A stretch of DNA of 64,000 nucleotides from Lepidodermella squamata. Its lineage: Eukaryota; Animalia; Gastrotricha. Shown here in pieces: positions 13,148 to 54,513 of the stretch (the stretch's first letter is position 1; each line of letters starts with the position of its first letter). The notes under the pieces were generated by a model that saw only the letters and a program-made list of their open reading frames with translations, did not search any database and was not told where the DNA came from. The position numbers were made by a program, and so were the translations under genes. The stretch is taken from positions 1,922,001 through 1,986,000 of the forward strand of contig JBLDXI010000033.1 in the NCBI GenBank assembly GCA_047495785.1, in the 5' to 3' direction.

Positions 13148-16100
13148 TTATTCCAAAAAGCTGACGTTGACAGTAGGTCTCGTTGCTGTGAGTTCAGAGT
13201 CTTCAATAGCTTTGCATGCGATATTGGCTGCGATCTGAGGAAGGTCAACGGGTGAATCGAGCGTTTTGCGAGTGAGAGGAATATGGCGCTCGAAAATTTG
13301 AACCATCAGGCTCACGTAACTTGTGAGAGGTATAACAAAAAGCTGAATGCTTTTGTCGCGAATTGTTCGGAGAATGACGTCTTCAGTTTTTCCGCATGGA
13401 CATCCATCTGGATAGCTGTCACTGGCTTTGCCGTTGTAGAAATGGCGGCCGTGGGGAGGGCTATCTGAGATCAAAATGATCACTTTGGAGCAGCCATTAC
13501 GCCATTGCAACTTCGATGCAGCATCCAAGCCATCAAGAACTGCTTCGCACCCGTCTCCGCCACATTGCGTGCCGATTCTATCGACAAAAGACGAAGCCTG
13601 TTGAGCATCAACGAGTCCACTGCTTTCCATGACCACAGTGTCTTCGTAATGGTCACGATAAGCGACAACTGCAAATCTGATAGACTCAGTCGTGCCGCCA
13701 AGGGCGGCGACCTGGGGAGTTGTTTCGGAAATGATTCGCTTGATTGCAGTTTTGCACGCCGCAATGTATTCGGTCATTGATAACGTCGCATCGATGCAGA
13801 AGCAGAGATCCAATCCGCTGAACGCTGGCCGCGTGAAATCGTGGCAGTCAAACACGTGATCTCGGGCGAGTTCCGACTTTGAGTGCCAAGCTGGCTGGGT
13901 GCAATAGCTAACTTCACGGCCTGCATGTTCGCCACTCGGGCAGTAGAAGTTGCAAAGTTCAACGTCATCGTCTTCAGTCGGCATGGCCCAGTTTTGAACA
14001 CGCCAATAAGTTTGACACAGGTACTTATCGTAGACGACATCAGTATCTGGGTAAAAACGTTCCGAATCACTGCAGTGCAGAACCCCATTGCCATGGACTT
14101 TCTGACCGCATTCGTCGCCACCTCGGCATTCGAGCAGATGGTAATGGGCCCTGCCTTTGCGCTTGCATTGCTGGACACACGTTTCGGCCATCAACACATC
14201 ACCGGGTTCGTAGACGCGAAGCGCCTTCTTACCAGCAACCGTGTCTTCGACAGTGATGCGACCTTCGCTGGTTTTGGCGACGCAGTAACAGAATTCCATG
14301 TTGCGATGAGTGATCGTCAGGTGAGGACCGCGATGGCCGAAGGGTTCACGGCAAAACGATCCGCACTGCATGCAACGCTGGTCGCATTTATGCTCTGAAA
14401 TACACAGAAAAAATGTCTCAAAATGGTGAAATGAGGGCGTATCTTACCTTCTGATTTGCAATTATGGCAGTCATCATGGACCCATTCACCAGGTGGCAAG
14501 ACCTCCATGCACTTCTTGCGGTTGGAAACCGGTCGAATATACTGGTACTCGAGAGGGTTGCGAGGGTGGGCCAGGTAACGGGTCTCCTCGACGTAGTGAA
14601 CCTCGCAAATACCCTCAGCTTCACATTTCTTCGGGCAGCGATGCTCTTTGCCGCACAAATGAAGCTTGACCCTACGAGTTGGACTGGCTGTGATCGAAGG
14701 GTCCATCTCAAAAGTTGGATCGTCGATTTCAATAGCCGTGTCATCATGGTCGTGATCACCAGTGCAAGGCCCGCCGCAGAAAATGCAACGTTTCGGGCAA
14801 TGCTTCTCGTTACAGCGGTGGTCTTCGTGCTTATCGACCAGCGTCTTCGAGCATAAATTAGGGCAGTACTGGCACGTAGCTGTGCATTGATGGGTCGACG
14901 AACATTTGTGACTAGCAGGATTCCCGTGACCAGCGGCGTACATGCAACGGCTAGCACAGGTTTCAGTTTCACACCTCTCGGGGCAATCATGCTGCTCCTT
15001 GTCGCAAATGTGATTGCCATCAGCGTGACCAGCAGGGTGCTTACACGGCATCGATAGGTCATCAACGGCGCAGATAGTGCATATATCGTCACATCCTATA
15101 GCATAAAAAACGATTTAACATCGAAATTGGCAACAGAGATAAGAAACTTACGATGGTTGGTGGTACAGGAACACTCCAGAAGCTTCTCAATTTTAGCCAG
15201 TTCGGCTTTCAACTTGGAATGCTGTTCGTTGGCATCGACCAAAAATCGAAGATGACTCATCCTCGAGATGAGTGAAATTTCCTGAGCTTCAAGCAGGGCA
15301 AGAATCGGCGCGATCACATCGGCAGTTCTAACATCGACGTACGCTTTCAGCTCTTCCTCGATTTCGCAGATTTGGGAAGCAAGGGTCTTTTTGTCAGCTC
15401 GAATCGCTTTGATTTCATCATTTGTTTCGTTGATCTGAACATCGATTTCCAGATAGACCAACAACGCCTCGGCTTCAGACTTCCACTCGTTGAATGCGGC
15501 GGAAATGGCCTCTTTCGCGAACTTGAAGGATTCAGCAATATCGATTTGTCTCTTCAAATCTTCGAGCTTGTTCGACAATGACGAAGCCTTCGTTTTCAAC
15601 AGCATCAACTGGTTTCCGTTAAATTGGGGCAAACGCAGCTTGCTTTCAACATCTTTCAGCAACGTTAAATTTTGTTCAAGATCAGCAACTAGCGTGCTTT
15701 TTTCTTCAGAAATCAGTTCGATTTCGGCTTTTATGATCTGATGATAAGCCTCGTCGTAAACTTCAGTCACAACAGGGACAGGGTTTTCGGCAGATTTCAG
15801 CTGCTGTTCCAAATCAGTTTTCTTCGACTGTAGAGACTCGACTTTCTCCCGGACAGCCTTCAGGGCGGTTTCGGTGACCTCTTCATCATCGGTATCCACC
15901 TTAAATTTCTCATATTTTTCCAGCTTTTCAGTTTGAGTTTGCAGGCGTCGAGTGACACTTTTCAGCTGTTGTTTCAACTCATCAACATTGGCGGAAATTT
16001 GTGATATCTCACTCGGCAAAGGCGACGTAGCTTGTTGCGGAATCATGATGAAGTCCGACGTGTCAGTATTCAGCTCAATTATGCTGCTGTTGTCCTCGGG

Positions 16101-19100
16101 AAACGGTGTAGATGAATCACGGCATTCTGAAGGCTGAGCCGCTTGTAATTTCGATAAACGCACGTCTTCCGCAGCCAAGCGCTTCGATTCATCCACAACA
16201 GCTGCCCAACGCTCGCGAATTTCCGCGATTTTTTCTTCGAAATATCGTTTGCCGTTACGCAGATTCTCGACACACGTTTCGTAGCCTGCTAACTCGTGTC
16301 GGGCAAAAGCGTGTTTCTCCGCAAGTTCGTTTGCCTCAGTAACCCGAGATTTGATCAACTCGTCAATTTCTTCGAGCAATACGGAACAGCTTCGATAACC
16401 GTCGAAGTGACTCTTGAGCTCTGAAAGCTCGATGAACGACTCATTGACCCGCTTATCAACCTGTGTGATTGAGTCGAGCCAAGTAGCACAGGCGCTGAGT
16501 CTCTTTTCAAGCTCCACTGGTAACGAATCAGCTCCAAACAATGTCGTGAAATCGAAAAACGAACGATGTAAACTGCTGGCGAGGGTGTTTTCCAACATCA
16601 GCGGTTTCAAATGTTCGCAAATGCGCAGTAGAAGATGGGCTTTCCGCTCGGGGTAAGGCAGGGCGAAATCAGCTCCACTTTCGTCCTCGTCCAGAGCTGC
16701 TTTCAACTCCGCGAGCTTCGTCATTTTCACAGCCTCTTCGGCTTGTTTTTCACTAGCTAACGATTCAAGGCGGTTGAGGCGTTGCTCCAGCTCGCTTTTC
16801 GAGATTGCATCATTCAACTCCTTCTCATGAGCGAATTTCGATTTCACAACTTCATCGAATTCAATCTTTGCGGTAGCGAGTTCTTCTTCGAATTCGGCTA
16901 TCATGAGCTGGTCATCAGGGGGCAATTTAGTCTTCAGCTCCTTGATTCGTGATTCAATCTTGACTCGATTATCGAAATTGGCCTCGTTATGGCCCTTTCT
17001 TTCAACGCATTTCAGCTGACACTTCGAGCAGTTGTTCAGGCAAAGAGCAAACTTGTTACCAAGGCTTCGGATTTTTTCGAGAACGCCGGTTTTGAAATTT
17101 TTCAGCTCTTCCGCATTGAGAACTCGATCCAATGAGCTAGCTTCGTTCATGGCGAAGTCCTGCAGAATTCCGATTCGCTGTGAGACAAATGTGCCGAGAA
17201 GTTCGTTGAAACCGATCCAAGCTTCGTTGTACTCAGCTTTTGCCACAGCTGGATCACAGGTTCCGAAATATCGGCTCGAAAGTTCGCGAGAGATCGATTC
17301 ATAAGCAATGTTGTGCTCAGATGGCTCTTCCTGTAGCTGGAATGTCACCTCGGTTTGAGCGATTGTAATTTCATCGTCGCAGCCGGGCTTTTTGAAAGTG
17401 CAAACTTCCGAGGTGCTGGTCTTGCTCATGTCACCCCAGGCCGCCATTATACGACTTTCGGCTTGGAAAATTTTAACCCGCTTGACATGCTCATCGCCAG
17501 CCTGCTCGTCGTCACGGTTCACCTGAAGCAGGACGATCTTCAGCGACTGCAGCAGCGTCATAGCATCCGGCCAACGGTTCGGCGGCAAACCGTACGTGCG
17601 GCTCAAATCATCGAAAAACGACTGCCTCAAGTCGTTCAACTCGTTGAGGAAAACATCTCGATTAGTGTAGCTGTTCAAGCACTGCAGGGTGATGGATTTG
17701 CTGAAAAGCCTGGACAAGAACTGATGATCGCCCTTTTGATTAAGCTGGACGATATTTCGCTCGAATTCCTTAGTGGCCTGTTCGTCCTCTTCAGAAGCAA
17801 CATCGCGAACAGCCATGAGGAGGAATCCTCGGAAGTAATTTTTGCCCTTCACTCGATCGACCGTGTTGTTCAGATCAGAGAAAAGTCGGGTCAAATGGCG
17901 GTTGAAAGCAAGGTCTTGGTTCAGAATCGTGATATCGGAAACAGCAGAAAGGACCGTAAGCAACTTGACTTCTTCCAACTCGTTGCGACTGATGCTGAAA
18001 AGACCCTCGCAATCCAGGATGACGAAATCGTGCTCGCTGTTGTCGTGATCGGAAATCAGTCGAGCGTAGCTGATCCAAATACCGTCAGTGCAACGAGTAG
18101 CTGCCACGCTGAACCTGGTTCCAAACAACCGGTTAAGCAGGTAGCTTTTTCCCGAAGATTGGCGGCCGATGATGCTGATGATTTTGATCGGACGGCCGTT
18201 GGCGAAGGTGGAAAGAATGCTCTCGAGATGGCCAAACGTGAGGCGATCCGCAAGATTGGCGATATCAGACGCGACGTCAGTGTTGCTAAACTGATGGCGT
18301 TTCCCATCAACAAGTGGAACGACATTGTTGTCTTCAATCGTGCCTAAAAAAAAATAAAAAATAATGTTATTTGAAATGCGAAGGTTATATCCAACGAATT
18401 AAGGATACATTTTCTATAAAGCCGATTAGGCTAACGATATTAATCAGGTCACTCCCAAAAAATAAATAAAAAACAATAAAATCAAAACGTATTCACTAAC
18501 CAAATTTCACCAAATAATTTCAACTTGTTCAACTTACATATGTGGAGAGGAACACGCGAAAGAAGAATAGCTCTTAGATGGCAGCTTTTCATAACGCAGT
18601 CCGACCAGCTAATCTTGAACTTTTCCAACAACTCGACTGAAATCGTGAGCTTGGGCGAAAAGGTTCGAAGGTACGATCGCAGAGCAACGTCGAATTTTTC
18701 GATTGAAGATCCAGCAGGCAAGACCAGGCGATAATCCACCTGCTCAGGGGATCCAATAAACCGAGCTTGGGGGCCGTATTTCAGGAAACTGGCGTAAACG
18801 ATATCGATAATCGGATTGCCGCGATATATTTCCTTGCTAGATTTCGAGTCGGAAACAGCACGCAGAGAAACATCGGAACAAAGACCGGTGAAAATATAAC
18901 ATGAAACCGCGTCTTTCTTGTCATCGTTTTGTTCGATCGCAGTCAAATAAACATTGGCATTATCGGCGAAGACTTTTACAGCTCGGCAACGCGTTGTGGG
19001 CAGCGATTTCAACAAGGTCAGATTCGGGTCGTACAAATCGATCGATGAGTCACTTCGCAGCACAAAGAAAGACGTGTTTTTCGTCACATGGACGCTTTTG

Positions 19101-21469
19101 TAAATCTCGCCATTTTTCGCTCGCAACTTCAGCTTCTTCAACTTTTTGCCGTTATTTTCACTCGGGCAAAGTTCCATGACGTCACGCTTGATCAAATCGA
19201 CGTTGTAAAGGTTACCTTGCTCAGTAAGCAGTAACATTTCTTTCCTCCCTGGGTAGATAGCAGCTGAAGCGACTTTGCCACGAACCGAATCAGATATATT
19301 GACAGTTTGCTTTTGATTGAACTTTGGAGAGTCGTTTTGAGAAAATTCGAACAGCACAACCTCCTTGTCATCGTAAATTACGCCCATCAGCGCCGTGTCC
19401 GTTGACTTCTCGCCAGCATCGTAGCAGAACAAGAGCCGATCGCTTGACCACGTTTTCACGTTTTTCAACTCGTTGTTGTTAGAAATGGTGACAGTTATGA
19501 CGTTTTGAGGCAAGCGGTCACACTTGAGTGACGCGATGAACAGCTTGCCGTTCCATAGCGCGTAACACGAAATCACGCGAAGACTGCGAATATAGTCATC
19601 TGAAAGCGATTCCTCAGATTTTTTGCCCCAGCTGAATGCTTTGGTATTGAGAATGCTATTCCGCACGGAGACTGGCAAAGCCTTTGCAAATACCTGAAAA
19701 AGAATTTTCACATTTGTACAAAGAATAAACCCAATATTATGAAAGCAAGCAACATTTTGCAGAATTAGAAAATTTTAGGAAACTTCGAGAGCTTACGCGT
19801 ATTCTTAAAAATTTCAAGTGGGTATAAAACAATATTTACCGAGAAAAACCCGATGGGAAAAGTTTTCACGATTCCGGTATTTTTCCGTTCCCGTCGACGT
19901 TCCCGGAACCACAAATTTTATGCAAGCCCAATTATTTAATAAAAAATGAAATAATAATCGATGTTCTTCGGAGATATTTTTGCTTGTTTGCAAAATTCGA
20001 GAGGCATTTTATAAACAAGTTCTTACCTCGCTATTAATTTCCGAACTCCAGTTGAGAGGCGAATACGTCATCGCTTCGTATTCTCCTTCGTTAGTTTGAA
20101 CAACATTGAGAACGCACGGGGTGATTTTTAAAACGCAGCTCGTCTTCTTGTTGCGTTGATTTGAGATGATCGCCGACTTGCATTCAGCAATCAAATCCAG
20201 CGCAGCTTTAGCCACAACTTCACATTTTCTCGTTAGAAGCTCGTGGGATCGGGATTCGTTGTAGATTCGATAAACCTCTTGGCGAAAGGTTTGGAGCGAA
20301 CACTCTCTTCCCAAATCCAATTTTTCGAAAAAGAAGTTTGCAGTGCTATCGACAAAATCGCGCAGAACTAGTTTGGGTTCCCATGAAATACAGTTCTTAT
20401 CGCTGTCATACGAATACGAATTGAGAATTGCATGAAAAAACTGTTCGACCATAAATTCGATCAGAGATTGGGCATTTGGGCCATCTTCATGAAGTTCGCC
20501 GTAGCCAAACATGCCGGTAAAACGATGCCAAAGAGATGGCTTCTGGTTTCGAAGGGAACTATTGACTTTGCCCAAGATCTGCTTCAAGCAGTAAGACAAC
20601 TGACCATCACAATCACGAATTTTTCGCTGAAAGGAGACGTGGTCCGATGCGATTCGTTTCATGCACTCCGGCGAAAGCTCATCGCAGAAAGGTTTCAAGC
20701 TGTCCAAATTAGAGCTCTTCAGCTGGCGAAGCAGAATAGGGGCAATGTTGCTTAGAACAGCGTTCACGTCCAAATGTTTCGCAGTGGCAGCTGAGTCGGG
20801 AACTTCGCAGTGCAGAAAGAATTTACTGCCGTTGTCGTTGAAAACCAGGCGACGCAATGCATTTTCTCCCAGCTCTCGTGTAAGCAAGTCGAACGTAGTT
20901 TTCAGACCCAGTTCTGTTATTTCGCTCAGAGTTTTGCGGTCTTCTAATTTGAACATCGCACGTGAGTGAGCAACCGAGGAGAACGGATTTTTCGGGCCAG
21001 GTGAGAATGAATCCACGATTTCGCGACTTGGACATAGCAAAATAGTGGGGGAGGCATCTTCGAGGTATCGGAATAGCGTGACTAATATATGCTCCTTATT
21101 GAAATTCTCTTGTTGATGCATGAATTCCGCACCAGCATCAACCAACAAAAGAACCTTTGAACCTTTGACCAACGCGTAAAACGAGCCGTATTTCGAATTA
21201 CCAGCCGGTAGAGTGATTTCGAACCGAGATACATCTGCCTCTTCAACTTCTTCGAGATTCGCATCGTTATCTTGAGCAAGAATTTCGTGAGCAGTAGAGA
21301 CGATCGAGTTACGGTCGCCGAATAAAGCCAACACTTTTGCATCCGACAACAAAGCTATTCGGCGTTGCAACTGATTCAAATCGATTAGGTTGACGCCAAC
21401 CTGTTCGAAGGAACTCTCGGCGCTGGTTACCAACTCTCCAGTGAAAGGTTGGTAAATGTGAACGCTCAT
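13148..21469 (-). CDS. giant multidomain GTPase, copy A (~2,561 aa): N-terminal domain, putative beta-propeller, GB1/RHD3-type GTPase, long coiled coil, Cys/His repeats, VWA
   Basis: Exons 21469-20027, 19693-18538, 18343-15152, 15095-14448, 14394-13148; all GT-AG, total 7686 nt, open frame throughout. GTPase motifs G1 GRQSSGKS, G2 RCTDGIW, G3 DCEG, G4 AVRD. VWA motifs DLCFCIDATLSM, RFAVVAYRDH, GGDGCEA, SDSPPHG. Confidence 0.88.
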
Positions 21470-22654: not shown

Positions 22655-25600
22655 TCAGTCGAAGTCCATAGCAGCGGTATTGACTCGACGTGTGGCCGTC
22701 AATTCGGCATCTTCGAGAGCTTTGCAAGCGATGTTTGCAGCCAACTCTGGCAGATCCAGCGCAGATCCAAGTTCTTTTCGAATCAAAGGAATGTGGCCCT
22801 CAAAAACCTTGATCATTCGATTGACGTAGCTTGTCAAAGGAACGACATGGTACTTGATATGTTTGCCTTTCATTTCACCCAAAACCGACGCTTCGTTCAT
22901 ACCACACGGGCAACCACCAGGGTGATCATCGCCTGCATCGCTGAACTGCCGACCATGAGGTGGGGCATCCAAGATGTGAATTAGTAGTCGAGTGCAACTA
23001 TCGCGCCAGTTAAGCTTATTGACAGCATTGAGCCCATCAAGAACCGCCTCAGGTCCATCTCCTCCGCCCATTGCTCCGATCTTATCGACAAAGGCCGAGG
23101 CTTGATCGCTAGTCGTCAATGGGATTGATTGCAGCAAATTAGCTCCATCGCAGTGGTCACGGTAGGCAACGACTGCGAAACGGAGAGAAGAGACATTGCT
23201 GCCGTATCTGGCGACTAGAGGGGCACTTTCAGCGATAATTCGTTTGATGGCGCTTTTACATTGAGCGATAAAGGAGGCCATCGAGCCGGTCGCGTCGAAG
23301 CAGAAACACACGTCCATACCATTGAAAACAGCCTTCGAAAAGTCGTGGCAATCGAACCCATGGTCTTTAGCGAGTTCCGATAGCGTGTGCCAAGCTGGCA
23401 GGGTGCAGAATTGCGGCTCTTTCACATCATGCTCTCCACTTGGACAATAGGCGTTACACAAGTTGATTGAGTCGTCATCCGTTGGCATGGCCCAATTTTT
23501 GATTTGCCAATATTTCTCGCAAAGGTATTTGTCATAGACCACGCTGGTGTCTGGGTAAAATCGTTCGTGTTCTTTGCAGTGAACAACGCCACTTTCGTAC
23601 AACTTTTCGCCACAGTCGTCGCCACCTCGGCATTCGAGCAGATGGTAATGGGCCCTGCCTTTGCGCTTGCATTGCTGGACACACGTTTCGGCCATCAACA
23701 CATCACCCGGTTCGTAGACGCGAAGCGCCTTCTTACCAGCGACGGTGTCTTCGACAGTGATGCGGCCTTCGCTGGTTTTAGCGACGCAGTAACAGAATTC
23801 CATGTTGCGATGCGTGATCGTCAGGTGAGGACTGCGATGGCCGAAGGGTTCACGGCAAAACGATCCGCATTGCATACAGCGCTGATCACATTTATGCTCT
23901 GAAACACAGAAAAAATGTCCCAAAATGGTGAAATGAGGGCGTATCTTACCTTCTGATTTGCAATTATGGCAGTCATCATGGACCCATTCACCAGGTGGCA
24001 AGACCTCCATGCACTTCTTGCGGTTGGAAACCGGTCGAATGTACTGGTACTCGAGTGGGTTTCGAGGGTGGGCCAGGTAGCGAGTCTCCTCGACGTAGTG
24101 AACCTCGCAAATGCCCTCGGCATTACACTTCTTAGGGCAATTATGCTCCTTGCCACATAAGTGAAGCTTAACCCTAGGAACAGGACTAGCTACTGCAGCA
24201 GATGAATCGATCTCGAAAAAGGGATCATCGATTTCGATGGTAGTTTCATCGTGGTCGTGCGCACCAGCACACGGGCCACTGCAGAAAATGCAGCGTTTCG
24301 GGCAGTGTTTTTCGTTACAGCAATGGTCATCATGAGCTTCGATCAGCGAGCTCGTGCAAGTGTTGGGGCAATAACGGCACGTGGCCGTGCACTGGTGGGT
24401 AGACGCGCACTTGTGACCGGCAGGGTTTTCGTGACCATTAGCGTACATGCATCGATTTTTGCAACTTTCGCACTTGAACGGGCAGTCATGCTGCTTCTTG
24501 TCGCAAATATGGCCACCTTCAACGTGCCCTGCTGGGTGTTTACACGGAATTTCGAATCTGTCATCGCAGCAAATGTTGCAAATTTCATCACATAGATGGT
24601 TTGTCGTACAAGCACATTCGAGCAGCTTCTCAATTTTATCCAGCTCGGTTCGCAATTTCACATGCTGTTCATTCGCATCGACCAATTCTTGAAGGCGGAT
24701 AATATCAAAACGAAGCAATTCTTCGCGGCGTTCAACTTCAGCAAACTTCGGAGTAAGTTCGTCGAGATTCTGGGCATCAGATAGCAATTCGACTTCCGAC
24801 TCAAGTTCGCGAGCTTGAGAGGATAGTGTTGATTTCTCGGCTTCTACGGCTTTCAGTTCTTCTTTCAACGACTTCCATTGAACTTCCATCTGCAAGCATT
24901 TGATAATTGCATCAGCTTTTGGCTTCCAAATGATCAAAGCAGCGTCGAAAATATCACGCACGGGCTTCATCGCTTCAATCACGCCAGTATCTCGTTTCAG
25001 ATCATCAAGTTTCCGAGATATGTTCGACACTTTGCCTTTCATCACATTCAACTGATAAATTCCAAAACGAGGAGCAGAAAGTTGCTTCTCAACAGATCGA
25101 AGCTTCGCCGTTTCTTCAGTAACCGAAACCGATAGATCAGATGACTTTTTATTCATTTCGGCCAGTTGAGTCTTGATGCTCTCGTAGTAGGCTCGGTCGA
25201 ACTCCTCCACAAGATCGTGGTGACGTACCGTCAACTTTGACGATGACAACTGGCTCTCGAGCTTCTCCTTTTTATCAGCAAGAGATTTGATTTTCTCCTC
25301 GAGAGCACTGATTCTCAATTCAGTGACTTGCTCTTCATCAGAATCGATGCCATCAGCCTTGTATTTCTTCAATTTCTCGGTTTCTTTCTCAAAGCGTCGA
25401 GTCACAGTGTCGAGTTGCTTCTGCAATTCTTCCTCGGCTAGAACCAGCTGCGGACTTTTCGACGGGGGCGGTTCACAAGGCGCTTCCGATTCTTCAGAAA
25501 CAAGGCAGAAATCCATCAAATCATTTTGAATTCCGTCGATTTCAATGATTCCACTGCTGTCACCGCTACTTGGAATCGTTGGAGTGCCGCTACTGGGGAA

Positions 25601-28600
25601 TCTTTGAGTTCGAGTCGCCTCTAGTTTCGAGAGACGGGCTTCTTCAGCAGAAAGTCGTTCGATTTCCGCATTCAATTTACTGCCATCGTCTCGAGCAGTA
25701 GCAATCGACATTTCCAGCGATAGCTTCTGATTTTTCAAATTTTCAACTGTTGCTACTACGTCGTCCAAATCTTTTTGAGCAGCGTTCAACTTGACAGTGA
25801 CTTCTTGCATCTCATGGTCGTTGCCACCCAGGAGTTTGTCGCATTCCTCAAGGGCACGCCTGCAATTTTGATAGCCTTCGTAGAAACGCTGCCACTCAAT
25901 ATACTCCAGGTAGGGTTCGCAAAGCTCGCGATTCCCGCTATCAGCAATCGCGTCAAACCAGGCAGCGCAATCCAGGAGAAGTTGCTCCAGCTTAACGGGC
26001 GAGGAATCTGGGGACAGGAAAGACGTCAGCTCAGAGAATGACTTCCTCAGACTAGCAACAACGCTCGGTTCTATAATCAAGGGTTGCAGCTGGTTTGTGA
26101 TTTCAGAGAACAAATCTTGTTTTTGTTCAGCAACAGGCATTTCTGTCGACCCTTCGCTGGTCAGCTGTTCGATTTTCGCCGATTTTTCCCGCTCTTCAAT
26201 TTCTTTTTGCAAAAGAACATCACCAATGCCTTTGAGACGAGTCAGCAAATCTTCCTTGGTCTTAGCTCGAGCTATCTCTTTTTCTAGGCTGAGCAGAACT
26301 TCTTTCGCCTCTTCGTGCTGGATCTTAGCGGTCGATAGCTGATCTTCGGTATCGGCCAGCCTCAACTGTAGATCAGCCGGCAGTTTGGATTTCAGCTCTT
26401 TGAGACGCTGCTCCAACTTCGTTCGAGTCTCGAATGTACCCTCGTTGTGGCCCTTTCTTTCGATGCACTTCAGATGACAAGAACTGCACTTGTTGAGGCA
26501 CAGCGCGAATCTAGAACCAAGCCCTCGAATTTTTTCTTCAATTCCAGTCAGGAAATTTTTTCGCTCTTCCAGCGATAGGAGACGGTCCAAGGAGCTGGCT
26601 TCATTCACGGCGTATTGATTCAAGATTTCAATGCGTTGATTCACGTAGCCGACAAGCAATTCGTTGAAACAACTCCACGTTTCGTTGTAAAGAGCCTTGG
26701 AAACAATCGGTTCTCCGCTGCCAAAAAATCGAATTTTCAGCTCTTTGAAAATGGTTTCAAAGGCGATTTCTTCGGAGTGATCATTGGGGTATTGGAAGCA
26801 GATATCTAGTTGGCCAACGCAGATTTCTTCAACGCTGCCTGGTTTGGTGACACGCGTAGCAGCTTCGGTGCCAGTTTTGCTCATGTTACCCCAGGCTGAC
26901 AAAATTCGACCTTCAGCCTGAAGCATTTTGATCCGCTTGACGTGTTCATCGCCAGCTTGCTCGTCGTCTCGGTTGACTTGAAGCAGGACGATCTTCAGCG
27001 ACTGCAGCAAGGTCATAGCATCCGGCCAACGCCTTTCCGGAACTCTGAATTTAAGGCTGTAATCTTCGAAGAAAGACTGGCGAAGGTTGTCAACTTCGTT
27101 CAAGAACACGTCGCGATTCGTGTAGCTATTCAAGCACTGGCGAATAATAGCTCGACTGAACAGCCGTGTCAAAAACTGATGATCACCGCGTTGGTTGAGC
27201 TGGACAATGTTTCGTTCGAACTCTTCAGCGCTTCGCTCGTCGTCCTCGGAAGCCACGTCTCTAATGGCCATCAAAAGGAAGCCGCCAAAGTAGTTCCTCC
27301 CTTTCACTCGGTCGACAGTGCTGTTCAGATCAGCAAACAAACGATTCAAATGACGACTGAAGCTGAGATCTTGGTTCAAAATCGTGATATCGGAAACAGC
27401 AGAAAGGACCGTAAGCAACTTGACCTCTTCCAACTCGTTGCGACTGATGCTGAAAAGACCCTCGCAATCCAGGAGGACGAAATCGTGTTCAGAGTTGTCG
27501 TGATCGGAAATCAGTCGAGCGTAGCTGATCCAAATACCGTCAGTGCAACGAGTAGCTGCCACGCTGAACCTGGTTCCAAACAACCGGTTAAGCAGGTAGC
27601 TTTTTCCCGAAGATTGGCGGCCGATGATGCTGATGATTTTGATCGGACGGCCGTTGGCGAAGGTGGAAAGAACGCTCTCGAGATGGCCAAACGTGAGCCG
27701 ATCCGCAAGATTGGCGATATCCGAAATTACTTCAGCGTTATTGAACTGGTGGCGTTTACCGTCGATCAGCGGGATGACGTTGTTCTCTTCAATGGTACCT
27801 GTAAATTATTAAGATTATAGTTTCCAGATACCTCTCTCAAGGCCGCTAAGTTTCAATTTAGTGATAGTCACAAAAATGCAAGTTCAACCCGTATAGACCT
27901 GACCTTGGATCGAGTAGGGAAAATTATTCTCTCAATGGATGTAACTTTTTCGCCGAATCTAAGTAATTAAAACTGCTACACCCGATGATGTGTGTTTAGG
28001 ACAATATGGGTTGAATACATGAATACAACCAAAATTTACAGCTGAAGCTAATTTACCAAATTAAAACGGTTACCAAAGTACAGCAATTAATTTCAGGAAT
28101 GAGCAATGTGAAAACGTACAGATATGAAGAGGAACGCGCGACAGCAAAATTGACCGCAAGTGTTTGCTGTTGGATTCACAGCTGGCCCATTTTATCGTCA
28201 AGCTCTCCAGCAGCTCAGCAGAAACTCTGCCAGTTAATTTCGTAGAGAAAGTTCGAAGGTAAGACTGGAAGTTCTTGTCGAAAGTTTCGAGTCCGGAAAC
28301 TCCAACAGGTACGACTAGCTTGTAATCAACGATTTCCGGTGAGCCAATGAAACGAGCTTGAGGGCCGTACTTCGTAAAGCTGGCATAGACAATATCGATG
28401 ATAGGGTTCCCACGAAAAGCCTTCTTCGCATCCGCCGAATCATCATCCACATTCTGAAAAGATACGTCAGAACACAAGCCAGGGAAAATGAAACTGGTCG
28501 CAGTGGTTTGCTTCGACTCATTCGAGTTCAAAACGGAAATGTAAATGTTAGCGCTATCGGAGAACAGTTTCATCGCCTGTGAGCGATTGGCCTCGATCGA

Positions 28601-30922
28601 TCTCAGCTTCGAGCAGTTATCATCGTAAAAATCGACGAACGAATCGCTTCTCAAAATGAAAAACGAGTTGTTTTTCGAAACATGAACGCTTTTGTAGAGT
28701 TCCCCATTTTTAGCCATCAGCTTTTTCTTCTCGATTTTCTTACCAGTGTTCAACTTTGGACAGATTTCAGTGAATTCTTTCCTCGCAATATCAACGTGAT
28801 AGAGGTTGCCATACTCGGCCAACATCAGAGCATGTTGACGACTGGGTAGCAGCGCTGCTGAAATGATTCGCCCGCGAACTTGGCCGGGAATGCCTGCAGA
28901 TTGCTTCTCAGCTGGTTTGAAGCCATCATGCTGGGACATTTCGAAGATAGTAATCGCGTCATCGTTAGAAATCACGGCCATCGCAACAGAATCTGTCGAT
29001 TTGTCGCCGCAGTCGAAAGCGAAGGTCAACTTGTCAGTGGACCATGCTTTAACAGCTCGGATTTCTTCTTGCGAAACCGTTGCCATTATAGTTAGGCCGG
29101 GTAACTTCGTGCAGCGAAGAAAAACGATGAACAGTTTACCGCTCCACAGAGCCACGCAATTTAAGATCTTGATGCTTTCGATGTAGCCATCAGGGACCAC
29201 GCCATTGCTCTCACCTCTGTGACAAGAATCTCGCTTGATCGACTTTTGGTAGCTGGTAGGCAGCAATTTGAAAAACGTCTGAAAACAGAAAAATTGGTCG
29301 TTGTAGCTAAATAGAACGCTCGTTTATGAATTTTATGAATTTGATTAATTTCAATTCTCATTTCTATTTACTAGATTTCTCTTTGCAATGCTGAGGGAAA
29401 ATGGCCAAATCGAGTAAAAAATATATTCAAGTTAATGAATTGATGGTAGTAGTTGCTGATAAAAGCCGAATAAGTTTTTTACCTCCGCATTCAATTCAGA
29501 GCTCCAGCTCAAGGACGAGTACGTCACAGCTTCAAATTGACCATCGTTGCTCTGCACGACCTTCATAGCACATGGAGTTAATCGCACCGACGCGGACGGT
29601 CTCTTCGTTTCCCTCTCATTCGAAATTGCCGTTTTGCAGTCTGCCAACATCTTTTTCGCCGCTTCGCCAACCTGAAGGCCGGCAGCGTTAAGAGTTTGGT
29701 GAAAGCGATGTTCGTTCAGTTCGATGTAGACACTTTGTACGACTTCGTGATGGGGCATGTCCCAGGTGTTGCTGTTCACCAGCATAGATGCGGCTTTTTC
29801 GGCGAATTCTCGCAAAATGGCTTTAGAATTCCACTTCACGGTGTAGTTTTCAACGTCATAGGACTCCAAAACTGAATGCACGACATGATTACACAGAAAT
29901 TCTGTCAGCGACTGAATATGGACGCCGTCAATATAGCTTTCCCCGGAGAAGAAATTGATTGCTCTGCTTAAAACACTTTTCTTCTGACGAGCTGCAAATG
30001 AGTCTCGTGATTTCGACAAAACGAAACGAACATCGCTGGAGAATCGATCACAGATACCGCGAATTTTATCGATAAAACGCCGATGCTCGTATTGAATTGC
30101 TTGGCAGCTGTCGCTGGATAGAGACTCAGCAGCAGCTTTCAGGTCACCGCAGATATAGGAAAAATTCAAATTTCTGAACAGCACCGGAATAATTTTGATC
30201 ACAATTTCCTTGGCATCGAAACTTGACGCATTCTTCTTCTCGGACTGGAGCGCGGCGTGCAAGAAATATCGAGAGCAATTTTCGTTGAAAATCAAGCGAT
30301 TTGCAGCATCTTCACCCAATTCTCGAGTGAGCAGATCGAGCGTGGTTCTCAGGGGCAATTCAGCGATTTCCTGGACACTTTTGCAATCCTCCAAACGGTA
30401 CATAGCACGATTGTGAGCGGTTGATGAGAAAGGATTTTTCGGGCCAGGAGAAAACGTATCGATTACTGCAATATCTGGGCAAAGCAGAATTGTCGGAGCC
30501 AAGTCCTCTAGGTATCGAAACAGGGTCACTAAAATGTGCTCTTTGTTGAATGAGTTTTGCTGCCGAAGAAAATCGGGGTCGGCGACTAACATCAACAGCA
30601 GCTTGCTTCCCTTTACCGCTGCGAAGAAACCGCCGTATTTACCATCAGTGATTTCAGGCAAATTCAGTTCTTCTTCCTCGATGTCTTCATCTTCCTCCAT
30701 GCTCTCCTTCTCTCCATCGTTTTCTTCGCTGAGAAGTTTTCGAGCGGTTTCTGTGACAGAATTTCGATCTCCAAACAGAGCAGCGACTTTCAAATTCGGT
30801 AGAGAGCCGATTTCGCGTTGAAGTTGGTTCAAGTCGTGCAAATTCACGGCGACCTGCTCGAAAGAACTTTCAGCACCCGTGACAACCTCGCCGATGAACG
30901 GCCGGTATAAATGTAGCCTCAT
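22655..30922 (-). CDS. giant multidomain GTPase, copy B (~2,563 aa), tandem paralog of copy A
   Basis: Exons 30922-29483, 29278-28120, 27798-23950, 23898-22655; total 7692 nt in frame. Its three introns match copy A in position and phase. Same G1-G3 motifs, G4 AIRD. VWA motifs DVCFCFDATGSM, GGDGPEA, LDAPPHG. Confidence 0.88.
27883..28015. mobile_element. putative MITE in intron 2 of copy B
   Basis: Imperfect 18-bp terminal inverted repeats: ttcaacccgtatagacct (27883-27900) versus the reverse complement of aggacaatatgggttgaa (27998-28015), 15/18 match. The ends resemble piggyBac-type TTAA-CCC termini. Confidence 0.35.
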
Positions 30923-32425: not shown

Positions 32426-34166
32426 TCACAGTTCGCCATGGTCGATAGTATCGGTCCAGAATGAATGATGTTCGATTGGCGGAGGCGGCACACTGCAAGC
32501 CGCCGGAGTCATGAAGTCCATTGCGTATTCGCAGCGATTAGGCTCAGAAACCGAGGTGATTTTGTTCTCGCCACCGCAGAGAATCTTCACGGTGATCGAT
32601 CGAGCCGGTCCATTCCAGCACGACTCGCCATGAGTATATGCTTGATAGGCGTGCTTATTGTCACCTTCCGCCCGCCACGCTTCAAATCGACCAAGATTTG
32701 TCTCGTGGTGGCCATGCTTCTGTTTCTGAGCAGCGCGGTCGAATGGGCACATCTTGTAAGTATACTCACGGTCATCCATCTCGAAACATTGGCCGCGAAG
32801 TGCGTAATACTCGCCGCTAGCACCGAAATCCGTGGCAGTAACGGAAACAAGGTCTGTGTACTCCCGATCAAGATCATCGTAGGCTTTACGAGCCTCCTCG
32901 TAAGTATTACGTGCCTGGGTGGTGAAAACGTGAAATCTTTACTAATTTAAGGAGGATTAATAAAACATACTTGATCTGCAGCTTCCATGAGTTTCTTTGT
33001 TTCCTCTGGGTATTCAGGCATTTTGAACTCTTCATCCTTCTTCTCTTCGTGGTGACGAGTATGATGAGGAGGACGAGTGAATTCGTTCATTCGCTCGTCG
33101 ATTTTCCTCTCCTCGTCTTCATCTTCCTCCTCCTCGCCGATAACAGTCGGTTCTGGCGCGGCTTCAGTTGTTGTCGAGGGTTCTGAGCCCGCTTTACGAT
33201 AGATTTCCTTGATATGAGGCCAGACTTTTTCGATGAAATGAGCGTGGTCAGCAGCACCGTCGGCTGGATCTTCCAGGTTCTCCCGAGCCTCGTCATCTGA
33301 AACAACACCGTCCCCATCAACGTCGAATTCAAGATGGGTTTGAATCTCTTGGAAAGTGATACGTCCATCCTTGTTTGTATCTAGATCTTCGAAAGCCTCC
33401 TCAGTCAAACGCTTCTGTTTTTCCTCTTCGAGGACCTTCTTCGTTTCCTCCCATTCTTTCTGGTGCTTGTCCTTCGCTTCACTTTCCAATTTCTCGACTT
33501 CCTCCTTCGTTTTCTGTAACCGCTGCTTCTCAGCATCAGCAGCCGCTCGTTCAGTTTCGATTTGCTTTAACCGCTCGCGTTTTTCGCCGATTTCGGTTTG
33601 ATATTTGGTGATGTAATCTTTGTACACTTGATGGCCTTGCTCCATGGTAGCCCGCTTCGCTTCGGCGGCTTCACGAGCAATTTTTCCGAGAGATTCGCAA
33701 GAGTTAGGACAGGGCGATGTGCCACCGGGTGTCAATTGCTCGTCACTGCCATCGCAGCAATCGCAAACACCGTCGTCGACGAACATTGAAGAGATATATT
33801 TTGGCCGAAAACCGACGTTAGGGCAGTAAAATTTTCCGTTGGGACAAGCAGAAGTGCCTAAGAATAAATTACAGGTTAATACAAGGGTTCCCATAAGTTC
33901 AAAAATATTCTAACCTGGTTCGTCGGAACCATCGGGACAGTCGCAGTAATCGTCATTAACATGTTCGAATGAGTAACTTTTAGACTTGTCAAAACACTGA
34001 AAAGGTTGGTCAGGCCTATATAGCGACAGTTCTGAAGAAAAACGTTTTCATCATTTGAAGATGATAATAATGATGCCAACTCACTTTGTTGAGCGACTCC
34101 TCGGGGTTTCAGCGATGCATTCGCATACGCTACTACAGCGAGCAACGTCAGTAATTTGAACTTCAT
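32426..34166 (-). CDS. PRKCSH: glucosidase II beta subunit
   Basis: Four exons. Signal peptide plus PRGV; [40 protein letters not shown]; EF-hands DTNKDGRIT and DVDGDGVVS; acidic tract; MRH domain EYTYKMCPF...CWNGPARS...EPNRCEY; C-terminal HGEL. Confidence 0.95.
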
Positions 34167-48759: not shown

Positions 48760-51700
48760 ATGAAAATCGTAACATTGGAGAAGTCAGGGCTGATCAAATC
48801 AGCTTTGCTCATCCTCGTCATATTTTCCGCAGCTGGACAGGTCGACGCAATACTTGGTAATTTATAAAAAAATTGCACAGCTTAAAATTAATATTTTTCT
48901 CGACTACAGAAACTTTTGTGAATTACATCTACTGGGGCCCGGCTGGTTACACTGCGCGGGTTGGTGTGTGTCCCGGAAATGACATCGAACTGGATGCGGC
49001 CGAAGGTGGGCCGCTGTTGACGCTTCAAAACGCAGACGAATGTGCTGAAAAATGCATCGCGCTTTCTAATCAAACCGAAAAGCACCCGGCATGCGTTGGC
49101 TTCACTTATTCAACTTCGACGAAACGTTGCTTATTGAAATCGAAATCATGCGGCGCCACCGTGATCAACGGCTCGACAGATACATCGATGATGTTTGACG
49201 CATTCGGTAAATTCGCCTATTATAAATTGTGATATTTAAACTAAATTTGCTGCTCATTATTTAAGGTGGAACCGGCTGTCCAGTCGGGTTTTATGGCTGG
49301 AACTGCTCTTACTACTGCAGTTGCGCTAATAACGATGTTTGCAACCCAGTCGATGGGTCATGTCCAGGTGGCTGTTCTGATCATCATTGGGGTTGGGGCT
49401 GCAGTTTAAGTAAGATTCTTAACATTTTATTGTGTCAAATTTTTAATGATTTTTTTTTCAATTTTTAAAGTCAACAGCTGCTTTTACGACAACGAAGGTG
49501 GAGCTCATTACAAGGGCTCTCGTTACAACGCCATCAGTGGAGCCATGTGCCAGCCTTGGTATCAACGTCAGCCTCACGATCACAACTACACCGATGCAGA
49601 TATGGCTGACGGGTCGTTATTAAAGGCGAGGAATTTCTGCCGAAATCCAAAGCCTTCGAACGATAGTACCAATGCGCAACCACAGCCAACAGAACCGTGG
49701 TGTTACGTGTTGGACAAGCCGGACGGTGAACGCGAGACTTGCTATGTCAAGAAGTGCAGTAAGTTTTGTGGCATCATCATTCATCATACTGCGGTGTCTT
49801 GAAGAGAGATACCGCTCAGCATATAAAATGCAAATTGTAGCTAATTATTTGTTTACATTTCTCACGCGCGTACTGCGCGTTTTTGTTTGTTAAGCCCTTC
49901 AAAGCACATCAAAGCACTTGAAAAATCTGCTTGCTTTCAGGTTGCGAATTCGGCCGTTACGGCACTAATTGCGAGCGCGAGTGTCCCGAGGGACGCTATG
50001 GCCAGGACTGCCGGTTTACGTGCCAATGCAACGCCGATGAAACTTGCAGCAAACTAACCGGCAAATGTCAAAGTAAGCGTTGAAACAAGAATGAAGCATA
50101 ATTTGGTTCTAACTTGAATTGCTTCTAGAATGCCCGCCTGGTTTTTTCGGTTCCGGCTGTTTGAGGCGATGCCATTGTCGAGATTCGTCTGAGGTGTGCG
50201 ATTATCGGAGCGGTGCGTGTACCACCTGCGCGGAGGGATTTGGCGGCGTAGATTGCTACACAAAGCTACCTTTTTTGAGCCAACAGCCTTGGGTCTCGAA
50301 ACGCTCACCATCCTCACTAACCCTAGCCTGGCAAGGCTGGTTTGCGTGCCACGTGACAGGTGGGTGTGGCGAGGGCCCCATCAACGGTTACATTGTCGAG
50401 TACCATCCGAAGAATGCTATGATCAGCAAATGGATTCAGGCATTAGTTTCAGCCAACACGACCGAAATCGAAGTAACGAATTTACACGATGACGTCATTT
50501 ACGAGCTTCGGGTGACGCCGATTCACGCGCAATGGCTGCAGGGTTTAGCCTCGGTTCCTGTTGAATTTCAACTCTGCGGCGATCCCAAGTCTGCGCCTCG
50601 TGACGTTGAGATATCGCACAAGAATTGCAACGAACATTTTTGCGAGGCTGATATTTCTTTCAGCAAAATCGCGAATCTCACAGAGCTCAACTGCGACAGT
50701 TCGAAGGTGACTTACGTTGTATCCTACGGCGAAATGGTTCGAAGCTCCAGCGATTTGGAGGCAAAAGAACCGGCGACCTACCAGACTGTTTCATGCCACC
50801 ACAGCAGCGAGTCGAACAGATGTAAACTATCTCTTGGCAGGCTGGCTCCAGGGTCAATTTTCAGCGTAAAAGTGTGCGCATCTTCAGCAAAAAGTGCGCC
50901 AACTTTCCTGTGGAAACGTCTCAGCGAAACCATGCTCGACAAAAAGTGCGGGCCTGTTTTTGCAACCACCCTGAAAACACCGCACGCTGAGCCTAGCGCG
51001 CCTCGTAATTTGACGCTGAATCACGTCGGGCCCCGTCGGGCTTTTATTGAATGGCAAACTCCAGCAACTCCAAACGCTCCAATCAAATCGATTTACTATT
51101 CAGTTGAGTTGAATGAGCGAAGAATTCGAGCGTGTGGTTCGGTTGAAAAATCCAACGTCGTAACATTTTTCGTCAACACTACTTCAGCGTATTTGGAGCC
51201 GTTGAAACCTCATTCAGACTACACTGTAACGGTGTTCGCGCACAATCCTGACCAGAAATCAAGCCAAAATGCGTCACTGGAATTCGCCACCCAACCTGCG
51301 AATCCTGAGGCACGGCTCAGTGCACGGGTGAAACAAATCGGGCAGGATTTTGTGCAAGTCTCCATCGAAGAACCATCGTGCCGGCAAATTCATGGTGACA
51401 TGGCTGGTTTCCGGTACGAGGTTTCCTTAGTAACACCTCGAAACGGGTCAACCCTTATCAGTGGAAATTCGAATGAGAGTGACTTCCGCATCGGCGGCTT
51501 GGAGCCATTTTCAAATTACGTCCTTGTTGTTCATTTGATCAATAACAAGGGCCCAGGCGGACCAAGCTCTCCTATCAAATTCCAAACCAAGGAATCAGTA
51601 CCAGCTGAACCTCGGCGCCTTGAAGTTATGAACATTTCTTCGAATTCAATGCAAATGGCTGTTGCATTGCCACCGAATCCTCGAGCTCAAGTTAAGTACA

Positions 51701-52639
51701 TCGAAGTCAAGCTAATCGATCTAGATCTAACCGCTCCTAGCAGCACATTACAGAAAAAGGGTGCCCCCATTCTGCGCTCAGCTAACTCGACAAAGGATGC
51801 TGAGGCGAAAAAAGACATTATCCGTGTAAAAGCTAGCGCTGATGGGAACATCGCGCTGTCTGATTTGCGGCCTAACACCAAGTACCGAGTTCAAGTCAGA
51901 GCTGTCGCGGAAACTGGCGCCAGCGAATGGTCTGATCCTATCATGATTCGGACAAGGAAGGAAAACTACGGAACAAGCTTAGAAGATGCGATGGCTGCAA
52001 TCTACGACGAATCGAGCTATTTCGAATCTATGCCGTTAATTGCTGGCTGTATCGTTTCGATTTTATTTGTCATCCTGATTTTCTCCGGCGTTGCGGCGTT
52101 CGTCATCATGTGGCGACGGCGCATTTCTCGGTCGATGGTACCTGCAGCAAGCAGTAGTCTGTCGCGAAGTTGCACCTCCGGCGGCACTTCGTCACCATCA
52201 TCTTCAACCGCCGCAGACGACGTGCAAGGTCGATGGAGGACGATTCCCCATTTCCTTCAGGTAAGCAACGTCGTTCTTCAAATCCTTACACCGAAACCTA
52301 ATTTATTTTCAAAATTTTTAGGAAATGAAGGGTGAAAGTATGATCTACACGACCCATGATGTGATTGGGCTGTGTGATTCTCCGCCTACGACATTCATGC
52401 CTCTTGGACATCCTGGTCATTCGATTCAGGTCAACACTGATAACAATCACAGCACTTGCTCATCAGCATCACCCGACAGCAACAACAGCAGCAGCGGCGG
52501 CATTGTTGGAGGTGGCCTCCTTAAAAAGGTCAATGCGCCAATGCCACCTCCGCGTCCGTTGCTGCGTCCTCCTCAACTTCAAGCTAAACCCGATCCTCGT
52601 AAAACAACATCGAATTCAAGATTTAACGCCAGGAAATAG
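48760..52639 (+). CDS. single-pass receptor (~1,135 aa): signal peptide, PAN/apple, EGF-like, kringle, 2-3 EGF-like, ~5 FN3, TM, short Ser/Pro-rich tail
   Basis: Exons 48760-48856, 48910-49206, 49266-49409, 49471-49758, 49941-50072, 50129-52260, 52322-52639 (3408 nt, in frame). PAN: CPGNDI..ECAEKC..CVGFTY..CLLKS. Kringle: YKG..SGAMCQPW..NFCRNP..PWCY. EGF: CPxGxxGxxC. FN3: LxPxTxYxVxVxA. TM: IAGCIVSILFVILIFSGVAAFVIMWRRR. Confidence 0.88.
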
Positions 52640-53368: not shown

Positions 53369-54513
53369 TCATGTCCAGGCCAGTGAGTAATTTGAAACTC
53401 GAAGCTTATCCAGCATAGCTTGAAAATTGGAATGATCAGCATCGAAAGCTGTTGAAGTGATCCCAGCTCTGAAATGGAAGAATAAATATTCGAATTGGAG
53501 CATGCCACCGGCATCGATGGGATGGAATGCGATGGCCGAGTCCGAACAACAATCCACGCCTTCGACGAAGCGATACGCATCGTGAACTCGTATCCATTCG
53601 TCATCTCCGACTCCGCCAGGCAGCAGATGCTTACCAGCTTCAAAAATTAGGAAACGCTGCCGGCCTTTCGAATCCCTTGAATCTGAAGGCGTGATGTTGA
53701 TGCTTTTAAGGCATCTTCCGAGTTCCAAGTCGTATCCGTTTTTCACCTCGAAATGATTATGACTCGGAGCGCAGACTGTAGGAAGTGAAAATGCCTCACC
53801 AACCAGTAATGCCAGGGCTTTCCACGATATCACATTTGCGGAGCCGTGAGCGTAATGAACTATGTCTTTCGGATTTTTCGGAATTGAATAGGGATCATCT
53901 CCATTTATCAAATCTCTTCCAAAGTAGAACGGCTTATTCGCGTCGTAGTCGGCCAGAAATAGTCGAAGGTTATCCATGACCATGTATGTATCATTTTCAG
54001 CGATGATAAACCACTCAAAATCGCTGAGATGCTCATCGTGAGCCCATTTCAGTGCATTCCTTGTTTGAGCCCACGATTCTCCCGCACTCGCGAAGCCTAT
54101 CGATCCAATATTCAGGTCAGTTTTATCGGATATAAAGACTATTGATGTACATCGAGTTCCCCATGTCAGCTTAACGTAATTGGCAACCGAGTCGTGTAGG
54201 TCCGAAGCTGTTCGGCACATGCAAAGTATTCGTATCGAGCGTTGGAGCAGTGCAGAAACATCTTTGTTATCAAATACTGATTGCCGATTCACCGCCGCCT
54301 TAATTGATAGCAATAACAATGAAATATTCTCGGGAAATTTGCAAGATAATTTACCTCAACAGGAGACCTCAGTCTAGCAAGTGATAAATATCGGCGATCG
54401 ACAGTTACAAGTTCTTCCGAAATAAACTCTAGCTCAATTAGAATGTATGTCGCTAAACAACATGCAAAGCAAAAAGCTATCACCACGAAAAGGCATCTTC
54501 GTTTCCGTTCCAT
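53369..54513 (-). CDS. core 1 beta-1,3-galactosyltransferase-like protein (GT31), DxD motif degenerate
   Basis: Exons 54513-54355 and 54298-53369. Type II TM; IRILCM, VKLTWGTRC, WFIIAENDTYMVMDNLRLFL, PFYFG, DLELGRCL, DSRDSKGRQRF, CCSDSAIAFH are C1GALT1-family motifs. Confidence 0.85.

Follow-up and report, generated by a model that had tools for sequence, protein, structure and literature searches.

Two giant GVIN-like GTPases of the gastrotrich Lepidodermella squamata with a predicted coiled-coil arm in a zinc module and a candidate docking peptide at its tip

Human GVIN1, an interferon-inducible member of the very large GTPases, coats cytosolic Burkholderia (10.1101/2025.03.24.645074). We report here on two genes, A (13148..21469) and B (22655..30922), found in a 64,000-nucleotide stretch of DNA from the gastrotrich Lepidodermella squamata (contig JBLDXI010000033.1, positions 1,922,001 to 1,986,000). 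This whole stretch is called the window, and all positions below are those of the window. Both genes, and all the features described within them, lie on the minus strand. A and B are shown to be old tandem paralogues. Each encodes a giant GTPase of the GVIN/URGCP-like kind that also has a Cys/His zinc array and, at its C-terminus, a von Willebrand factor A (vWA) domain. They resemble GVIN1 and URGCP in their giant size and in a GTPase domain for which Pfam gives a match to URGCP_GTPase, though one below the gathering cut-off; here, however, a zinc array, a vWA domain and a predicted coiled-coil arm accompany the GTPase. GVIN1 is not known to have any of these three. The element under study is the predicted tip of this arm, located at 16041-16084 within a 3-kb exon of gene A, for which an initial annotation of the DNA had proposed a role in ATG8 binding and in xenophagy.

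Several kinds of short peptides are known to dock by beta-strand addition, in which the partner gains a short strand: LC3-interacting regions (LIR) for ATG8-family proteins, FIP200-interacting regions (FIR) for the FIP200 claw, SUMO-interacting motifs (SIM) for SUMO, and UFM1-interacting motifs (UFIM) for UFM1. The iLIR paper gives a regular expression, xLIR, with a chance rate of about 1.5×10−3 per position, and lists DDFVMV as the verified LIR of ULK1 (PMC5119064). The core of FIR peptides is psi-Theta-x-x-Gamma, where psi is Asp, Glu, phospho-Ser or phospho-Thr, Theta is Ile, Leu, Val, Phe, Tyr or Trp, and Gamma is Leu, Ile or Val (PMC7946963). Motifs of the UBA5 type can serve both UFM1 and ATG8 (PMC10183829). 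As described below, the loop at the tip of the arm resembles all of these to some extent, and the arm itself resembles those of the SMC, Rad50 and MukB proteins.

The coiled-coil arm in a split zinc module

Eleven homologues of A and B contain a zinc module whose two halves, first C-x3-C-x2-C-x3-C-x5-H and then C-x-C-x-[TS]-x-H, are only a few residues apart. The halves are separated by 605-770 residues, always at the same point, in A, B and another five or six homologues. The first half of the module of A is found at 16989..17042 and the second, of the form C-x-C-T-T-x-H, at 15153..15173, and the insert occupies the interval between them (15174..16988, residues 381-985 of the open reading frame, ORF), with two arms of about 280 residues each. 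In B, the insert spans 24617..26446 (ORF residues 380-989). Both inserts are about 605-610 residues long, with their midpoints at residue 683 in A and 684.5 in B. Because the insert splits a module that is contiguous in the 11 homologues, its two ends must meet, and it should therefore fold back on itself as an antiparallel coiled-coil arm of the SMC/Rad50 kind.

The inserts of both paralogues were modelled with AlphaFold2 (AF2), using a six-sequence alignment. Long helices were predicted in both, many of them with a predicted local distance difference test (pLDDT) above 90, together with one long unstructured segment per insert, centred within one residue of the midpoint. The predicted template modelling (pTM) score was 0.38 and the global TM-scores were low, as expected of flexible rods, so that the overall shape of the arm is not fixed by the model. 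In a Foldseek search of the PDB at E≤0.001, the matches ranked 1 to 11 were all arms, belonging to MukB, condensin Smc2/4, Rad50, Smc5/6, JetC and cohesin. Entry 5xg2, a fused antiparallel Smc coiled-coil segment, gave a TM-score of 0.55 when normalised by target length. The split zinc module, the predicted helices with their central loop and the Foldseek matches all bear out the earlier placing of the motif at the tip of a coiled-coil arm. We conclude that an antiparallel hairpin with a disordered apex, forming an intramolecular coiled-coil arm, is a well supported prediction from sequence and model. If straight, such an arm would measure about 35-40 nm, given a rise of about 0.15 nm per residue.

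Besides being the best PDB matches of the AF2 model, the arms that end in the Rad50 zinc hook or the SMC hinge, and those of MukB, compare well with the present one in strand length (about 280 residues) and in having interruptions along the arm. Base and apex differ. Where those proteins have ABC ATPase heads, the base here is a Cys/His zinc module in a GTPase-vWA protein, and no ABC-type ATPase head made from the N- and C-termini was found. At the apex, neither a hinge domain nor a CxxC zinc hook could be detected in the loops of A and B, by sequence or in the AF2 models, and the arm ends instead in a disordered loop with short motifs. A zinc hook was considered for the tip and rejected, since there is no CxxC and the Cys residues of the loop are not conserved in position between A and B.

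The apical loop and its two islands

The apical loop covers ORF residues 664-704 in A (16017..16139) and 661-710 in B (25454..25603), its length varying between 41 and 51 residues with the choice of boundaries. Both loops are predicted to be disordered; they correspond to residues 324-364 of the AF2 model of A, which are non-helical with a pLDDT of 30-45, and to residues 322-371 of that of B (pLDDT 31-38). Each contains 10 Ser and 6-7 Pro and has a net charge of −7, so the Pro/Ser/acidic break previously noticed near the midpoint of the insert is real. The sequences and coordinates given for the two paralogues were likewise confirmed by translating the minus-strand exon ORFs, which yields SSIIELNTDTSDFIMIP for A (ORF residues 681-697, 16038-16088) and SGIIEIDGIQNDLMDFCLVSEESE for B (ORF residues 677-700, 25484-25555).

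The hydrophobic residues of the loop are gathered in two islands, IIE[LI] and DFxx[IV], separated by 5-8 residues, the spacing differing by 3 residues between A and B. The first island lies on the midpoint of the insert. It reads IIEL in A (16071..16082, the exact midpoint), where it is SIM-like or UFIM-like, and IIEI in B (25538..25549). The second, 7-13 residues after the midpoint, has a LIR/FIR-like core, Asp-Phe-x-x-Ile in A: it reads DFIMI in A (16041..16055), followed by a Pro, and DFCLV in B (25499..25513), followed by the acidic run SEESE. Thr-Pro and Ser-Pro sites are also conserved around the islands in A and B, with S-x-T-P before them and S/A-P and P-S after them (approximately 16089-16110 and 16017-16040 in A, 25559-25585 and 25454-25480 in B), where proline-directed phosphorylation is possible.

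Each loop contains a stretch of 45-47 residues in which Lys, Arg and His are absent and Pro, Glu/Asp and Ser/Thr are abundant; basic residues bound it, and its composition is PEST-like. The loop could accordingly be a site of instability or cleavage, by which the turnover of the protein is regulated or the arm is severed. We consider this very improbable: PEST composition is a weak predictor, and the conserved hydrophobic islands would be left unexplained.

Across the insert, synonymous differences between A and B amount to a proportion put at 0.65-0.95 or at 0.7-0.85, which in either case means that they are saturated. Because of this saturation, the loop has had ample time to randomise. Its similarity between A and B was nonetheless greater than in composition-matched shuffles (P∼0.007 for the whole loop, and P∼0.001 for the central 20-24 residues), and the identities cluster in D-x-S-x-I-I-E and D-x-x-D-F. 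The linker had been called poorly conserved; this needs correcting, as the loop is about 34-39% identical, just as the flanking arms are. That the islands were kept although synonymous sites are saturated, and that the similarity of the loop beats shuffles, is a point in favour of a function.

The same figures bear on a simpler explanation, in which the loop is a mere flexible closure of the hairpin, the LIR and SIM look-alikes arose by chance, and the likeness of A to B reflects a general constraint on composition. Without constraint, the loop should have randomised at this degree of synonymous divergence, which is difficult to reconcile with the score of its central residues, with the clustering of identities in two islands, and with the similar length, charge and Ser/Pro content of the two loops. 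We regard chance closure of the hairpin as possible, if doubtful, and a number of observations speak for it. When each loop was shuffled, an acid-preceded [WFY]xx[LIV] appeared in about 5% of cases and [VI][VI]x[VIL] in about 7%; the pattern had been picked after looking, and many motif classes might have been noticed post hoc. The loop also tolerates indels. In run X1, a second copy of the segment 15004-16140 was present at about equal depth, with a divergence of about 6%, and may be either a haplotype or a very recent duplicate. Among the differences listed for this variant copy (40 of 213) are two deletions in the apical loop that keep the reading frame, of 3 nt at 16033 and of 6 nt at 16131, as well as single-base insertions at 15104 and 15140, inside an intron. 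The two deletions flank the islands on both sides without overlapping them, a point that in turn favours a docking function.

Candidate partners of the tip

The LIR core [W/F/Y]-x-x-[L/I/V] is present at aligned positions in the two paralogues, as FIMI in A and FCLV in B. Acidic or phosphorylatable residues precede the Phe, namely T-D-T-S-D in A and N-D-L-M-D in B (Asp at −1 and −4), and in both cases the motif is in an accessible, disordered segment, with low pLDDT and no secondary structure in AF2. It is the sole acid-preceded [WFY]xx[LIV] found at a common position in both inserts. The peptide of A, TDTSDFIMIP, is close to the GABARAP-preferring LIRs of ULK1 and ULK2 (DDFVMV and DDFVLV), with which it shares D-F-x-M-x, the I/V changes being conservative. 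In ULK1, the motif has an upstream DT and a following Pro, as in A. Both peptides lie in a disordered, Ser/Pro-rich and acidic context; that of ULK1, however, is placed in the linker between the kinase and C-terminal domains, and not at the apex of a coiled coil. The SDFIMI of A matches xLIR. The earlier comparison of this peptide with the ULK1 LIR is upheld. In B, MDFCLV has residues outside the xLIR set at positions 1 (Met) and 4 (Cys) and retains the degenerate core only.

The FIR core psi-Theta-x-x-Gamma is matched by DFIMI as well as by DFCLV, as it is by FIR2 of CCPG1 and the LIRs of Optineurin and p62. The upstream T-D-T-S of A is phosphorylatable, in keeping with the acidic or phosphorylated residues found upstream in these peptides, whereas B has few acidic residues there, and the consensus is highly degenerate. 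For the first island, a FIR core is present in A only (S-I-I-E-L), provided that Ser682 is phosphorylated; in B, G-I-I-E-I has a Gly at psi. The likeness to SIM and FIR motifs that had been suggested for this island followed by acidic residues thus stands for SIM in both paralogues, and for FIR in A alone, under this condition.

SIMs are taken here in their general definition, not that of a curated model, as [V/I]-[V/I]-x-[V/I/L] with an acidic or Ser flank. IIEL and IIEI, with their Ser/Asp flanks, agree with it. The partner could thus be another ubiquitin-like protein, either SUMO, bound through IIE[LI] and its Ser/acidic flanks, or UFM1, bound through EDN..IEL in the manner of UBA5. In the human UBA5 peptide EIIHEDNEWGIELVSE, a LIR/UFIM that docks both UFM1 and GABARAP, the residues E-D-N and I-E-L are in register with those of EDNSSIIELN in A. 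This is a resemblance only: the Trp of UBA5 is a Ser in A, and B shares only D..IE[IL]. Given in addition that the SIM-like pattern arises by chance in about 7% of shuffles, a SUMO or UFM1 partner appears improbable to us.

Another explanation is that the islands mediate self-association, either by tip-to-tip pairing, as a homodimer or an A-B heterodimer, or by docking of the acidic tip onto, for example, the metal site of a vWA domain, so as to build a polymer or a coat. The arm tips of the structural neighbours Rad50, SMC and MukB are commonly dimerisation or docking modules; two beta-prone, four-residue hydrophobic stretches with a polar turn would suit a beta-hairpin or zipper; the vWA domain of the A and B proteins has a D-x-T-x-S metal-site motif; and coat formation on bacteria is known of GVIN1, the human relative (10.1101/2025.03.24.645074). 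The lack of a CxxC hook and of a folded hinge, the shifting Cys positions, the absence of predicted structure at the tip and the 3-residue difference in island spacing argue the other way, and we hold self-association to be rather unlikely.

Relatives of A and B were sought to see how far the loop extends. A word-index search with the B exon retrieved 18 family members, with identities of at most 39%, and homologues carry the Pfam domains PF25683, PF05879 (RHD3) and PF02263 (GBP). The nearest homologue found, P0001 (2,646 aa, ENA metagenome contig ERZ746982 NODE_100), is 39% identical and has the same order of GTPase, split zinc module with insert, Cys/His array and vWA domain. Its insert is 770 residues long; unlike those of A and B, it has a hydrophobic, aromatic-rich centre that lacks a Pro/Ser/acidic loop as well as both islands, IIE[LI] and DFxx[IV]. 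Three other insert-bearing homologues, all distant, have a [DE]-Y-x-x-[LI] preceded by a Pro or a Gly-Asp near the midpoint of the insert (around residue 731 in P0002, 924 in P0003 and 1584 in P0009). MAFFT aligned this motif under DFxx[IV], and it was considered as a counterpart of the second island, then rejected, because it occurs 1-6 times per insert against 1.2-2.5 in shuffles, which is not significant. A literature search on the architecture of the family returned nothing relevant.

The points that weigh against a docking function, several of which also speak for a chance linker, can now be set out. One is the misfit of B to xLIR, described above. The loop is known in only two related sequences, A and B. 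A profile hidden Markov model of the tip with 100 residues on either side, searched against 1.84 billion representative proteins, found no true relative; its sole match, P0019, is a bacterial repeat/coiled-coil protein with no feature of the family, and was discarded as spurious. None of the insert-bearing homologues P0001, P0002, P0003, P0006 and P0009 has a Pro/Ser/acidic central loop, which means that distant homologues close the hairpin without one. To judge from public data, an acidic loop of this kind, with two islands at the apex, is confined to this lineage. Sliding-window nonsynonymous divergence (dN) and identity are the same in the loop as in the arms, and the ratio of dN to synonymous divergence (dS) is uninformative, dS being saturated. 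AF2 gives the islands neither structure nor contact. Finally, the exons scanned, which comprise all but the last exon of A (13148-14394), contain four xLIR matches in A and two in B, none of them shared as xLIR; for a protein of this size (about 2,560 residues), several would be expected by chance. The consensus patterns are very degenerate, and LIR predictions made from the motif alone often fail.

Weighing these points, we infer, tentatively, that the islands form a real docking peptide, which would engage its partner by beta-strand addition; this is the likeliest single class of explanation. In both proteins, a helical insert of about 610 residues has been placed in the first zinc module, where, as argued above, it folds back as an antiparallel arm closed by the disordered, Ser/Thr/Pro-rich loop of charge −7. 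On this reading, the two islands carried by this loop would act as a bipartite short linear motif displayed at its far end, docking by beta-strand addition as LIR, FIR, SIM and UFIM peptides do. The upstream Ser/Thr residues (TDTS in A, TP and SP sites in both) might serve as phospho-switches. As specific partner, an ATG8-family protein and/or the FIP200 claw, bound through DFxx[IV], is the leading candidate from the sequence, although in itself an unlikely one. A role in xenophagy, as originally suggested, would be a further step, to which the sole link is an analogy with the human relative GVIN1 and its coating of cytosolic bacteria. In its complete form, the proposal is that of a giant GVIN-like GTPase whose arm of about 35-40 nm, set in a zinc finger, would hold out a phospho-regulated LIR/FIR peptide, so that target recognition by the GTPase, vWA domain and zinc array would be combined with recruitment of ATG8 and FIP200/ULK at a distance; such a self-contained selective-autophagy receptor would have a new geometry, and we think it quite unlikely.

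The two genes in the window and implications for the family

Gene A has five exons, at approximately 20009-21469, 18482-19711, 15152-18343, 14448-15095 and 13148-14394, and gene B has the same architecture. The protein, of about 2,560 residues, consists in A of an N-terminal region without Pfam match, the GTPase, a helical domain, the split zinc module with its arm, further Cys/His modules and the vWA domain. A Pfam scan placed URGCP_GTPase at the start of the large exon and VWA_4 at the C-terminal domain. The score for PF25683 (URGCP_GTPase) was 25 bits (E∼7×10−6), compared to a cut-off of 55 bits, with queries that contained half of the domain, the P-loop being just upstream in the same exon. 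This exon indeed begins upstream of the listed ORF, at about 18343 in A (exon 3), and encodes an intact P-loop, GRQSSGKS (18144..18167). Its first 120 codons or so, the P-loop region, are near-identical in A and B, with a dS of 0.02-0.05 (about 17895-18254 in A and 27340-27700 in B). The likeness suggests that gene conversion took place here recently between the old tandem paralogues.

Introns in A and B, where mapped, are of the GT..AG type and about 51-56 nt long. In gene A, a 56-nt intron (15096-15151) directly follows the second half, C-x-C-T-T-x-H, of the zinc module, and the raw ORF ends at the acceptor TAG of this intron. It is absent from gene B and must have been either gained or lost as the two genes diverged. 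A second small intron is common to both genes (14395-14447 in A, 23899-23949 in B). The copy in B, of 51 nt, is in frame, and the raw ORF reads through it, gaining 17 spurious residues. Run X2, which we guessed to be an RNA run, gave a contig that skips the small intron. This contig, joined at 14394/14448, was rejected as proof of splicing in gene A, because 16 of the 16 differing positions checked in that stretch carry the bases of paralogue B. It follows that splicing removes the intron of B and that spliced RNA is present in X2. X2 contigs cover the whole of gene A. At 13283-17581, many of them show joints between opposite strands about 90-120 nt apart, probably fold-back artefacts of short-contig assembly.

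Four other genes of the window encode a glucosidase II beta (PRKCSH)-like protein with an EF-hand (32947-33894, minus strand), a fibronectin-III/DSCAM-like protein (50119-52335, plus strand), a Fringe-like glycosyltransferase (53369-54319, minus strand) and a fragment of an SMC protein with hinge and C-terminal head (59060-61072, minus strand). These neighbours are ordinary animal genes and fit an animal genome.

The arm grafted into a zinc module is a more unusual feature of these proteins than the motif at its tip, which, if real, belongs to the LIR/FIR class in an unusual position. What has been found is a candidate short motif, present in two paralogues; predictions of this kind often fail, and the value of the finding lies mostly in the clear test that it offers. 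Even without a link to autophagy, it designates some 20 residues as a target for mutagenesis in an unstudied protein family. If the proposal is true, docking motifs would have a new mode of presentation, on the tip of an SMC-like arm that is itself set into a zinc module; and if the tip peptide does bind ATG8 or FIP200, very large GTPases would be tied directly to autophagy in a non-vertebrate animal.

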